This document shows positions 7,495 to 50,206 of a stretch of 64,000 bases of DNA, in pieces. Source of the DNA: Dicyema japonicum. Its lineage: Eukaryota > Animalia > Dicyemida. Position 1 is the first letter of the stretch. Each line of letters begins with the position of its first letter. A model generated the notes under the pieces. It ran no database searches, was not told the DNA's origin, and saw only the letters and a program-made list of their open reading frames with translations. The translations under genes and the position numbers were made by a program. The stretch lies in contig RDEW01000016.1 in assembly GCA_011109175.1 (NCBI GenBank), positions 108,087 through 172,086 of the forward strand, given 5' to 3'.

Positions 7495-8250
7495 NNNNNN
7501 NNNNNNNNNNNNNNNNNNNNNNNNNNNNNNNNNNNNNNNNNNNNNNNNNNNNNNNNNNNNNNNNNNNNNNNNNNNNNNNNNNNNNNNNNNNNNNNNNNNN
7601 NNNNNNNNNNNNNNNNNNNNNNNNNNNNNNNNNNNNNNNNNNNNNNNNNNNNNNNNNNNNNNNNNNNNNNNNNNNNNNNNNNNNNNNNNNNNNNNNNNNN
7701 NNNNNNNNNNNNNNNNNNNNNNNNNNNNNNNNNNNNNNNNNNNNNNNNNNNNNNNNNNNNNNNNNNNNNNNNNNNNNNNNNNNNNNNNNNNNNNNNNNNN
7801 NNNNNNNNNNNNNNNNNNNNNNNNNNNNNNNNNNNNNNNNNNNNNNNNNNNNNNNNNNNNNNNNNNNNNNNNNNNNNNNNNNNNNNNNNNNNNNNNNNNN
7901 NNNNNNNNNNNNNNNNNNNNNNNNNNNNNNNNNNNNNNNNNNNNNNNNNNNNNNNNNNNNNNNNNNNNNNNNNNNNNNNNNNNNNNNNNNNNNNNNNNNN
8001 NNNNNNNNNNNNNNNNNNNNNNNNNNNNNNNNNNNNNNNNNNNNNNNNNNNNNNNNNNNNNNNNNNNNNNNNNNNNNNNNNNNNNNNNNNNNNNNNNNNN
8101 NNNNNNNNNNNNNNNNNNNNNNNNNNNNNNNNNNNNNNNNNNNNNNNNNNNNNNNNNNNNNNNNNNNNNNNNNNNNNNNNNNNNNNNNNNNNNNNNNNNN
8201 NNNNNNNNNNNNNNNNNNNNNNNNNNNNNNNNNNNNNNNNNNNNNNNNNT
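7495..8250. other. Assembly gap (N run)
   Basis: Continuous Ns. Confidence 1.
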
Positions 8251-38010: not shown

Positions 38011-39875
<1,865 letters not shown>

Positions 39876-41579: not shown

Positions 41580-42705
41580 CTAGCAATCAAAATATCTCAA
41601 TGAAGCCTCAACACATTTATTGAAAAAGATTAGCAATCCTCCAAGTAATCAATCCAATGTGGGGGGATAGATAACCGATAATAAATGAAGTGACGAGATT
41701 GACATCATCATTCGTCAACAAATTAAGCCCAGAAATGTGCCTAATAGAATCCGTTGGATTATTAGTGACTTTCCCTTTTCTATTCACCCCTAGCAATTAT
41801 TCACCACCAAAACCAGAAAACTGTAGCTTCGCCCCAATAAGTGAGTCAGTCAAAGAACCCAGAATCCCAGTCACCCCACAAAATAAAATAACAGGCCATT
41901 GAGGATGAATAAGAGATTCAGCAAAAATATAGCATTTTATCAACGTAAAGCTGTAAAAAACACAGCCGATCAAAGTTCCCCCAGCAACACTAGAGAGGGT
42001 CCCAATAATTGAGATTCCCCCATTTACTCCAGGCGGGACAACCTTGAAAGTCGTGATCAAAACGGTGCTTCTGAACCGAATAGAAGACCCAAGTTCCGAA
42101 GCGAGAGTATCAGCAAAGGAACAGGATAGACAACCAAGAAACGATAGCTTGGCGCACGTGGCAATGAAAAACTCACGAAAATTCAACGGGGAGTCGTGAT
42201 AATCTCCGTTGATGAGACTTTTGAAAAGCAGGAGAGCAGCGATTCCGCCGTTACAGACGACTTGAATCCAATTTCTCTTGATTCCATAAATATGAACGAA
42301 TATTACTGTGTCGTGGTGAATTTTTATTTTATAGTTTTTCCGAAATTTCGTCGCCCTGGAAGCAGCAAAAAAGTAAAACAGCAAAGTGAGAAAACAAACG
42401 GGGGACGACAGGCACACCATAACGCCGACAAGAAAGGCTTACTAAATATTTTCAAAAATATACCTGCGACTTTTCCTGAGAGATCCAACGACGAGGAAAC
42501 GAAAAACTTTGAAATAATAATGTTGGGGAGAAGGCTGAATATAATGGTGGAATATGAAGGCAATCTAACAACTAATATGAAATATAGTCCTAGTACATTT
42601 GAATATCAACAAATGAATCCAGAGGAAAATATCGGTGAATATAAACACTAGCACCAAAATTGGGAGATAAGACACTCTGAGTTTAGATAAAAGCTGACGG
42701 AACAT
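41580..42705 (-). CDS. TMEM19: Transmembrane protein 19 (DUF92)
   Basis: KRNWIQVVCNGG..ADTLASELGS..LITTFKVVPPGVNGGISIIGT..GSLTDSLIGAKLQFSG..RHISGLNLLTNDDVNL; the exact 3' end is uncertain. Confidence 0.9.
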
Positions 42706-47083: not shown

Positions 47084-50000
47084 ATGGTCCCGTGGATTAA
47101 CAAATTTTTGCTTAAAAACCACTGTGACCCTATAGAAGATGATACATTCGGTATAAAAGTCTTCACACGTTTAGATTCGCTACCATTCTGCCTTAGAATC
47201 ATGTTAGAGTCTTGCTGCAGAAACTTTAATGGGAAGCAAATAAAGATTTCCGAGATATTAAAGTTCATTGACTGGCAAAGCAACGTCCAACCCCCCAACT
47301 ATTTTCTGTTTAAGCCGGCGAGAGTTATGCTTAAGGATTTCACGTACTTTTTGGTTCAATTTCAGTGCCATTCCCATTATTTGCGACTTGGCCACAGTAC
47401 GTGATCATGTGAATTCCAAAAGTGACCACAATACATGTGCACGTGTTAAACCGCAGTGTCTGGTAGACCTGTTTGTTGACCACTCCTTACAAACCGAGAT
47501 CTCCATGTATGATATTATCCTCCATTCTAGTCCCGGAAATGGAAAATGCTCCAATTTTAAAATGTTCGGAGACACGTGCCCATTTCACAGGAAAGAGTGC
47601 TCCATGTTTACCTGGTAGTTTATATTTAGGTCGGACTCCATAAGGATTAACGAGGGAATGAATTCAAGAAATACAACGAGCATTATAAAATACTGAAGGT
47701 TTGTCGCTTTCACTAGGTTAGTGGGCTTCCGAGACATTCGACAACGTTACTACCTTCCCTCCTGGCCTGGGCACCCCCCATCACTTCAACGTGAAGTTCA
47801 TGGCTCGATTTTGTGTCGAGACTAATAATCTGATGTATCCCGACAGTGTTGTTGGGACTGACAGTAATCTGTCCATACTTAATGGACTGGGGATCTTTAG
47901 CCTGAGTTGGTAGTCGACTAATTTTCCTAGCGTCCCCCTTCGCCGATTCAGGAAGCGCAGTTCTTGGCTTAGCTTTGAGTGTGACCGTCAATGAAATTGT
48001 CGGTGTCGGATTTTCGGTGATATAAGGCAGTATGTGAACTCCACGGACGTCGTCCTCGACATAATCCGCGTATTTTCCTGGGCTTTAAATCAGAGGTTAA
48101 GAGAAAGTGAAAGTTCGCTGAATTTTGTCGAATTCTTCGGTCCATCCGTGTCCAAGTTGACTGTGAATGAGAGAATGGTCATAGCAAACATGTGCAGCGA
48201 ATTTGGCGCGGTTGTGGCCTACTTTCCACCAGACGACACCTTGATTGACTACTTTAGACCAATATGTAGTGATTGGTCCCATGGTAGTGGGACATGATGT
48301 GTGCAGTCGATTCTACGAGTATTTAAAGTCGGTCAAATTATTCCGATCGGACTCAGTAGGCACTTCAAATCCGCGTTTTTCCAGGGTTAGTCCTCTAAAA
48401 GTCATGCTTAGGTTATCGACGTCGACCTCAGCTCAATTCAGTCTTTTTGCAGTCTCAGAAAGCAGAAATCCCCCATGAATGAAATTAGACCCTTCATTTC
48501 ACAGCACATCAGTCAGAATTTTAATATTGTAAGCTTGGGGGAGTACATTTTAGTGTGACTCTGGAAAATTGAGAGCCGAAGTTGTCTCCGCCTCCATAAT
48601 GCATTACACCAACCATACAGTTTCCTCAGTGATGTTGGCTGCGGGTTTCGCTTCATTCGTGAAATTTAAGGACTGATGGCCAGGAATGCATTCGAAGCCG
48701 GGTTTTCAGTCAAATCCAACATAAAGTGTTGTTTGCTGCCGGGAAACTCACTGAGTGTCCCCTATCTTCTCTACAGTGGGACTTACGACTTTCTCACTAA
48801 GATTGGGTTTTCCGAATGATTATTCTTAGCTTCATGGTGGTCGGCTACGGATGTTCTGAGTGCATTCAGAATTACGAGAAGCTCAAGTCACAAGAGCCCG
48901 AAGATGTTTGTGTTGATGGATGATATTTAGGGAGGACTATTACGATTGGCTGTTTCCTCAAAGAATCACGAATCTCTGAAATCTGGCTCTGTCAACGATA
49001 TACTACTAGTGTCCCCTCTTTATGTGGTTGCTTACGCACTTGTGGGGGATGCCTTGTTCGACTTTGACTCTCATCCACTCGGATTCCACCAGAAAACTAA
49101 GAATCCAGTTTTCCTTTCAGACATCTGGCCTTCTAGAAGCCAAATTAACGTATTTTTCGCTCTAAAACAAAGGAGACAATCAAATCCTCTATTAACCCCC
49201 AACTTTACACTCAAATGAGCAAGAAAATACAAGTAGAGTGAATAACCTAACTAGAATGGCTCTTTCCATTGGAATAATATCAAAACGGGTACAAGTCGTG
49301 ATAGTCTCCTCTATGACTGGAATTCAGAGTCAAATTGTGTCCTCCCCACTCCATTTCTTTATAAGGTTTTCTGTTAGCTCAGCTTGAATAGGACTTTAAA
49401 AGTGGGAGCAAGTTAAAGAATATTTATAATGCACGTGCAATGTTGATGATGGGTGATGACGTGGTCTCTGGACTCATTGCTCCTGCGGGAAGTATTCCAA
49501 GAAATAGTCAAGCCTCCCAATTTTTACTTTCATATGGGTTGATGTTCATATAATGGTAGTCTCGCTCCTCGTGATCTTGGCTCCTATGGATTCTATCGTG
49601 GATCTCACGAAGTCATGGTTAGGGGGATGTTTTGTAATCCTAAACTGGATTGTCTGCTGAAAGGAGGTTCAAATTCCTTTGACAGTCGCACTTCCAGTCT
49701 TCAAGTTGTCCATTACCCAACTCTTGACACCCTTCCCCTTTATTTGGCGGCAGTAAGATATCAAAAGGAAGGGGTTCCTCTGATTATTTTTGCCGGACAT
49801 AACTTTGGAAGTGGTACCCCCCGCGATTGGATGGCCAAAGGTCTCGTGATGCTCGTATGACTTATGTTTATCGTGAATAGGGTGTAAGGGTGGTAGTAGC
49901 TCGTTCCATCCCCGAATGGTACAGATTCGACCTAATTAGTGTCGGAGTAATCCCTCTATGCTTTCAGTCTGATTCGTCGTTGGAGACGCTAGAATTAGTT

Positions 50001-50206
50001 GGAAATGAAATTTACGATATTCGTTTTCCATTTGTCATCGAACCTTATTGTACTGTGAAAATTATGGTTTTACGGTGTTTTATTCCATTTAGGTCGACCA
50101 GGACAGTGGGTTTGACGTTACGCTTAATTGTGTGAATGATTTCGAAATCACTTTGTTGCATCATGGAGGGATTTTTCAACATTGCTTTCGAAACATCGCA
50201 AATTAA
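47084..50206 (+). CDS. Cytosolic aconitase / iron-regulatory protein family (ACO1/IREB), predicted catalytically dead
   Basis: LPFCLRIMLES, FKPARVM..DFT, VDHS, YPDSVVGTDS, NSTDVVL, FVEFFGPSV, IANMCSEFGA, VVGYGC..CI, DIWPS, VMVRG..NP, GVPLIIFAG.NFGSG..RDW.AKG, LISVGVIPLCF, GGIF. All four domains are collinear with ACO1 across many micro-introns. Confidence 0.93.

Follow-up and report, generated by a model that had tools for sequence, protein, structure and literature searches.

Aconitase/IRP1 is the textbook example of an enzyme with a second role, that of an iron sensor that binds RNA. To our knowledge, vertebrate IRP2 is the only well-known nonenzymatic relative, and it still has the cluster cysteines. 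Here, we describe an ACO1/IRP-like gene of the dicyemid Dicyema japonicum, which lies on the plus strand at positions 47084 to 50206 of a 64,000-nucleotide (nt) stretch of contig RDEW01000016.1 (assembly GCA_011109175.1, contig positions 108,087 to 172,086; hereafter the window, whose own numbering is used throughout). We propose that this gene probably encodes a cluster-less pseudo-aconitase maintained by selection, that is, a genuine descendant, complete with introns, of animal cytosolic aconitase/IRP1 whose enzyme chemistry appears to have been dismantled while selection was acting on it.

In IRP1, the cluster requires C437, C503, and C506, and the cluster-free protein opens and binds iron-responsive element (IRE) RNA; a C437S mutant of IRP1 binds IREs constitutively (PMC3048577). 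Contacts with the IRE are made at the loop by R269, S371, and K379 and at the C bulge by R713 and R780, together with S681, P682, D781, and W782, and T438 and N439 also contribute (PMC4184891, PMC3048577). IRP2 arose by duplication in 'higher eukaryotes' (PMC3048577). Membership in the ACO1/IRP clade need not mean IRE binding, as Caenorhabditis elegans ACO-1 and the Arabidopsis aconitase illustrate (PMC4184891); these two proteins are described as aconitases, whereas the Dicyema protein cannot be a normal one.

Open stretches across all three frames of the Dicyema interval resemble the aconitase family. The Pfam domains Aconitase (PF00330) and Aconitase_C (PF00694) match exon pieces of one chain that is colinear with IRP1, so that the features of the aconitase subfamily (both domains, a single chain of about 890 amino acids, IRP1 order) are all found here. 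For five exons, the sole significant sequence matches in the PDB were IRP2 (human, 6vcd) and IRP1 (human and rabbit, 2b3x and 3sn2). Aligned end to end with IRP2, the spliced model scores 539 bits at 36% identity (blastp), and in a MAFFT alignment its ATG at 47084 and its TAA line up with the termini of IRP1 and IRP2. The initial annotation, made from the letters alone, had called the gene a full-length ACO1/IRP homologue, and the Pfam domains, the PDB matches, and the end-to-end alignment all bear this out. A database homology search with one query gave vertebrate IRP2s only, and a search of the window for a second aconitase-like locus found none.

The gene model, which was built with a custom spliced protein-to-DNA aligner and four reference proteins and then checked for open frame, has 18 exons and encodes 862 to 873 amino acids, depending on how the junction at 47999 to 48030 is read. 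It contains 17 clean GT-AG introns, of which 16 span 19 to 26 nt and one spans 125 nt; 16 of the 17 have lengths that are not multiples of three, and G+C content is lower in the introns (37.8%) than in the exons (43.6%). The earlier statement that the gene splices in frame is thus correct for these 17 introns but not for positions 47999 to 48030, where the frame changes without a clean intron. Genes split by very short introns are typical of the window (G+C, 36.5%), the canonical micro-introns of this gene match the size usual for the genome, and the published D. japonicum genome has a G+C content of 36.7% and a mean intron of 38 bp (PMC6736024). In other animals, the only report of ultrashort introns is from myxobolid myxozoans (PMC13644364).

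The gene departs from the family in residues that carry its chemistry. Positions are given in human IRP1 numbering, set from the PDB alignments (2b3x chain index plus 1) and from IRP2 (minus 75). Lost are Q86 (to Lys), Q179 (His), H207 (Asn), S436 (His), C437 (Tyr), N535 (Ser), R541 (Leu), T676 (Val), T677 (Ser), D678 (Gly), H679 (Leu), S681 (Ala), R699 (Tyr), R712 (Tyr), S778 (Thr), and S779 (Pro). Kept are D125, H126, H178, D205, S206, R269, N298, E302, S371, T438, N439, C503, C506, N537, E539, P682, R713, R780, D781, and W782, while R536 is Lys, the state seen in IRP2. Ten of the 20 tabulated active-site positions are replaced, or 11 if the conservative R536K is included. Whole motifs have been rewritten too: no trace is left of GWGVGGIEAEA (218 to 228), ERIHRSN is mostly replaced, and the S371-K379 loop has been rewritten with an indel. 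Only two of the three cysteine ligands of a [4Fe-4S] cluster are therefore present (C503 and C506, with Tyr at 437), and neither Ser778 nor the His/Asp/Arg substrate set is intact (S778T, S779P, H207N, R541L, N535S, D678G, H679L, and Q86K).

Tabulating the active-site and IRE-contact residues, a check that the initial annotation had suggested, confirmed the active-site losses and found 9 of the 11 contacts kept (changed are K379E and S681A). Of the individual changes that had been claimed, those at Q86, H207, D678/H679, and S778/S779 recur in phmmer alignments, the Tyr at 437 is encoded by TAC in an ungapped block, and the GPKRPQD loop is indeed unrecognizable in the MAFFT alignment; C503, C506, T438/N439, RDW, and VMVRG are retained as described. 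The SGNRNFEGR motif had been aligned one position off: R541 is changed as stated, but phmmer and MAFFT give N535S and R536K, with N537 and E539 kept. The accompanying claim that most catalytic residues are lost was overstated, as roughly half of the classical active-site residues survive. The assignment of C437Y depends on an ungapped MAFFT block with the conserved TN and SVMLAAGL on either side, the 30-amino-acid exon being too short for a PDB match. Representative homologues carry Ser at position 778 in 148 of 155 cases and Cys at position 437 in 24 of 26; C437Y and S778T are not tolerated variants. With C437 gone as a ligand and S778 as the base, and with H207, R541, and D678/H679 also lost, the protein is not a normal aconitase, and we infer that it could neither assemble a normal cluster nor interconvert citrate and isocitrate.

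Comparison with described proteins places the Dicyema gene apart from each of them. Like vertebrate IRP2 (IREB2; 6vcd), it belongs to the ACO1/IRP subfamily but, to judge from its residues, lacks aconitase activity; IRP2 is also the best PDB match for four of the five matching exons, and the two proteins have in common R536K and the absence of Ser at 778. Unlike the Dicyema protein, IRP2 retains the GVGGIE motif as well as all three cysteines, H207, R541, and D678/H679, and it has a 73-amino-acid Cys/Pro-rich insert after residue ~136, of which the only canonical splice solution for the Dicyema gene leaves no counterpart. Since almost every residue lost here, along with the full set of cysteines, is present in IRP2, the suggestion that the gene evolved apart from vertebrate IRP2 stands, and because the IRP2 duplication belongs to 'higher eukaryotes,' the IRP2-like states of the Dicyema protein are convergent. 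With IRP1 (ACO1, human and rabbit; 2b3x and 3sn2/3snp), the protein shares the same four-domain architecture, length, and termini, and its substitution at C437 recalls the mutant of IRP1 that is cluster-free and constitutively IRE binding (C437S; PMC3048577). IRP1 itself, in contrast, has all catalytic and cluster residues and is switched by its Fe-S cluster, whereas 10 of 20 active-site positions and parts of both RNA-contact segments are replaced in Dicyema. A further divergent ACO1-like protein of a parasitic invertebrate is the 'cytoplasmic aconitate hydratase-like' protein of Gordionus sp. (XP_065314159.1), presumably a nematomorph, which has S778N/S779T; deviants at the catalytic serine thus occur in other invertebrates. 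The Gordionus protein keeps C437, C503, C506, H207, R541, D678, and H679, is 1,289 amino acids long, and is only 33% identical to the Dicyema protein; it is not an orthologue, although it may be another independent noncatalytic ACO1 relative.

The pattern and extent of divergence argue that selection accompanied these losses. Among near-invariant columns of the family, 148 of 220 (67%) are kept and 72 are changed, an extent that chance would not produce, while distant bacterial-type homologues subjected to the same treatment keep 81 to 91%. Polar invariant positions have been kept less often (42/75) than hydrophobic, Gly, or Pro positions (106/145; Fisher p = 0.015), and such polar-biased loss is the pattern expected of a fold that may have been retained while its chemistry was lost. 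In a neutral simulation on the coding sequence, the probability of encountering no stop fell below 0.05 after ~100 substitutions, equivalent to ~8% amino acid change. The gene has diverged several times beyond this point with zero stops. Because a neutral sequence would have gained stops by then, the open frame has been maintained by selection, and long-term neutrality is excluded. Nearly all of the change therefore occurred with the frame under selection, which points to a functional noncatalytic protein for most of the gene's history.

This divergence is a property of the gene and not of the lineage, because a control exon of IMPDH lying 8 kb upstream is ~72% identical to human IMPDH2, with its catalytic-cysteine loop intact, compared with 36% between the ACO1/IRP-like gene and IRP2, and because invertebrate IRP1s are 64 to 69% identical to human IRP1 (PMC4184891). 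In local blastp alignments, the whole model reaches at most 44% identity. A phmmer search with the exon 16 region (98 amino acids; the query, 49543 to 49857, came to 105 amino acids with the intron read-through counted) yielded no relative above 51% identity among 1.84 billion representatives. An exact-product look-up of two open reading frames (ORFs) of the window in protein collections gave no match, and a neighboring TMEM19/DUF92 gene likewise had no self-match; because this control neighbor is absent too, the absence of the ACO1/IRP-like protein from databases says nothing about its expression.

Several observations weigh against a functional pseudo-aconitase or limit what it might do. The structural motifs GWGVGGIEAEA and ERIHRSNL are eroded along with the catalytic ones, which makes it less certain that the protein folds properly. 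The junction at 47999 to 48030 looks like a 1-nt frameshift with IRP-like sequence in both frames, and the gene could be dead now. Most of the RNA-contact residues that survive do not vary in any aconitase and hence carry little information on RNA binding, while R541L, K379E, and S681A, together with the rewritten segments 436 to 442 and 534 to 544, speak against canonical IRE recognition. Finally, a scan of the 64-kb window at the Rfam gathering threshold found no IRE.

At the junction, NEIVGVGF (to about 48013) and the sequence GDIRQYVNSTD that follows from 48016 lie in different frames, and the shift falls at a run of four T's (48011 to 48014). On both sides of the break, the two frames resemble the IRP strand-loop VIGYRLMGKPHPLVTSTD, and inserting an X at the break makes the spacing to IRP1 free of gaps. 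Three candidate GT-AG introns would restore the frame, of 14 nt (48017 to 48030), 26 nt (48005 to 48030), and 32 nt (47999 to 48030), and these would remove 5, 9, and 11 residues, respectively, of the VIGYRLMGKPHPL strand-loop. The only candidate that keeps the strand is the 14-nt one, which falls below the 19- to 26-nt range of the gene's other introns. A long-divergent ACO1 derivative that has only recently died, through a real 1-nt deletion in the run of T's, would account for a switch of frame from one IRP-like reading to another where an intron has no space, and it could be a duplicate beside an intact ACO1. By the marks of a pseudogene, the locus has no stops, 17 good introns, and one apparent 1-nt frame break at 48011 to 48016, and one indel with zero stops is how a very young pseudogene is expected to look. 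We nevertheless regard a dead gene as unlikely, if the most serious of the alternatives, as this is a single lesion in 2.6 kb and a GT-AG intron of the modal size, 26 nt, also restores the frame. Moreover, the lesion sits in a homopolymer, and the published assembly was merged from PacBio RS II (Falcon) and Illumina contigs with a heterozygosity of 1.24% (PMC6736024), which makes an assembly or allelic indel equally likely. Three readings fit the sequence, namely an indel of assembly or allelic origin, a recent frameshift that is real, and splicing of the 26-nt intron; the simplest view of the break is that an indel arose in assembly or that the lesion is very recent.

If the gene encodes a cluster-free pseudo-aconitase, the protein might resemble IRP1 in its open apo form. 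It would then most plausibly bind a ligand, possibly RNA, in the former active-site cleft, where both walls of the C-bulge pocket (R713 and R780, with D781, W782, and P682) survive along with T438, N439, R269, and S371. The specificity of binding would be altered, and no Fe-S cluster switch would operate. A cluster-independent binder of RNA in the old cleft is compatible with the sequence, which hints at it weakly.

It is doubtful that the protein goes further and acts as a constitutive IRP-like regulator that recognizes mRNA hairpins without an Fe-S switch, in convergence with vertebrate IRP2 and with the C437S form of IRP1. The surviving residues of the cleft just listed, the constitutive IRE binding of IRP1 C437S (PMC3048577), and the state of domain 4, the best-kept domain with 50 of 65 invariant positions, are all in keeping with such a role. 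Retention of 9 of the 11 contacts, though, does not clearly exceed the background of 67%, and the majority of these residues are conserved also in aconitases that lack IRE binding. Some ACO1 orthologues bind no RNA at all (C. elegans and Arabidopsis; PMC4184891). R699Y and R712Y add to the three substitutions already counted against IRE recognition, the S371-K379 loop has been rewritten with an indel, the contact segments 436 to 442 and 534 to 544 are about half rewritten, and the window holds no IRE. The broader idea that a dicyemid independently made a cluster-free regulator binding RNA or another ligand, so that a nonenzymatic IRP resembling IRP2 would have originated a second time by convergence, and perhaps from its sole ACO1, strikes us as rather improbable on present sequence evidence. 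The framing of the animal as a host-iron-dependent parasite is conjecture.

An enzyme that is still an active aconitase, with its deviant residues explained as sequencing or assembly errors or as tolerated substitutions, is very improbable: although C437Y is a one-base difference (TAC versus TGC) and C503, C506, D125, H126, D205, N298, E302, R713, and R780 are kept, the 72 of 220 changed columns are spread over 12 exons and in many cases require at least two base changes, homologues hold to Ser778 and Cys437 almost without exception, and substitution errors do not occur on such a scale, the neighboring IMPDH gene being normal.

Table 1. Exons, introns, and a candidate polyadenylation signal of the D. 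japonicum ACO1/IRP-like gene (window coordinates; residues in human IRP1 numbering)
Feature	Position	Strand	Remarks
Exon 1	47084-47343	+	LKDFT, Q86K at 47333-47335; phmmer to 2b3x, 3sn2, 6vcd
Intron 1	47344-47365	+	22 nt, GT-AG, phase 2
Exon 2	47366-47529	+	D125, H126 kept (VDHSLQ); MAFFT alignment
Intron 2	47530-47654	+	125 nt, GT-AG, phase 1; length outlier
Exon 3	47655-47698	+	Matches IRP1 LEFERNRERFEFLK
Intron 3	47699-47721	+	23 nt, GT-AG
Exon 4	47722-47905	+	H178, D205, S206 kept; Q179H; H207N at 47866-47868; ungapped phmmer to 2b3x 158-216
Intron 4	47906-47930	+	25 nt, GT-AG
Exon 5	47931-48069	+	GWGVGGIEAEA replaced by SLTSPFADSGS; holds frame break
Intron 5	48070-48093	+	24 nt, GT-AG candidate; only length divisible by three
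Exon 6	48094-48265	+	R269, N298, E302 kept; Pfam Aconitase 5.9e-18
Intron 6	48266-48287	+	22 nt (or 19 nt from 48269), GT-AG
Exon 7	48288-48385	+	From spliced alignment and MAFFT
Intron 7	48386-48411	+	26 nt, GT-AG
Exon 8	48412-48528	+	S371-K379 loop SGPKRPQDK replaced by SLRKQKSPMNE; region ~23 amino acids shorter than IRP1
Intron 8	48529-48553	+	25 nt, GT-AG; read from sequence, frame check
Exon 9	48554-48644	+	IMHYTN: S436H, C437Y (TAC, 48605-48607); T438, N439 kept
Intron 9	48645-48670	+	26 nt, GT-AG
Exon 10	48671-48806	+	KTSLxPGS replaced by KCCLLPGN
Intron 10	48807-48829	+	23 nt, GT-AG
Exon 11	48830-48911	+	GYGCSECIQN: C503, C506 kept; G508Q
Intron 11	48912-48930	+	19 nt, GT-AG; shortest
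Exon 12	48931-49149	+	N535S (48958-48960), R536K (48961-48963), R541L (48976-48978); phmmer to 2b3x 536-595, 6vcd 609-671
Intron 12	49150-49172	+	23 nt, GT-AG
Exon 13	49173-49232	+	Linker region
Intron 13	49233-49254	+	22 nt, GT-AG
Exon 14	49255-49365	+	From spliced alignment and MAFFT
Intron 14	49366-49391	+	26 nt, GT-AG
Exon 15	49392-49537	+	TTDHISPAGN replaced by VSGLIAPAGS; D678G, H679L at 49470-49475; S681A; P682 kept; phmmer to 2b3x 659-696
Intron 15	49538-49559	+	22 nt, GT-AG
Exon 16	49560-49854	+	R699Y, R712Y; R713 kept; S778T, S779P at 49816-49821; R780, D781, W782 kept; phmmer to 6vcd, 3sn2, 2b3x
Intron 16	49855-49880	+	26 nt, GT-AG
Exon 17	49881-50066	+	From spliced alignment
Intron 17	50067-50092	+	26 nt, GT-AG
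Exon 18	50093-50206	+	TAA at 50204-50206
Candidate poly(A) signal AATAAA	50261-50266	+	55 nt past stop; weak in AT-rich DNA

A few of these features call for comment. Intron 2 is the sole canonical splice that links exon 2 to NEFKKYNEHYKILK. Within it, the frame of exon 2 stays open for 28 Cys-rich codons, near the site of the 73-amino-acid insert exon of vertebrate IRP2. Extending exon 2 through this stretch, followed by a 40-nt intron, was rejected: no canonical splice can take it in, the frame is not maintained, and the 4-mer CPFH that it shares with the IRP2 insert is a chance-level match, seen in 2% of shuffles. Apparent frameshifts at 47544 to 47721 and at 48556 were an artefact of using the insert-bearing IRP2 as reference, and canonical introns resolve both. 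Intron 5 has no in-frame stop and may be retained, adding 8 residues. Relative to IRP1, exon 16 has an 8-amino-acid insertion. The gene also contains three CACGTG palindromes (47440, 47573, and 49432), compared with 22 in the whole window. Runs of N that mark scaffold gaps occur at 1070 to 1693 and 7495 to 8249, with single N's elsewhere, and none falls inside the gene.

Upstream, IMPDH exons with read-through micro-introns occupy 39020 to 39731 on the plus strand, the piece used as the control being 39020 to 39382. The TMEM19/DUF92 membrane-protein ORF is on the minus strand at 41797 to 42420 (207 amino acids), and its best match is from the mollusc Pomacea canaliculata, at 45%.

Text searches of the literature for an ACO1/IRP without the cluster cysteine or for a pseudo-aconitase found nothing relevant, and they returned no report of an invertebrate copy that has lost the cluster ligand and the catalytic serine and is yet under selection. 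If expressed, the Dicyema gene would reveal which elements of the fold remain important after the loss of both catalysis and the Fe-S switch, and it would bear on the handling of iron and citrate in an extremely reduced parasite. If freshly broken, it would be a record of the loss of cytosolic aconitase in progress. Should the gene be the animal's only ACO1, cytosolic aconitase and the classical iron switch would both have been lost.

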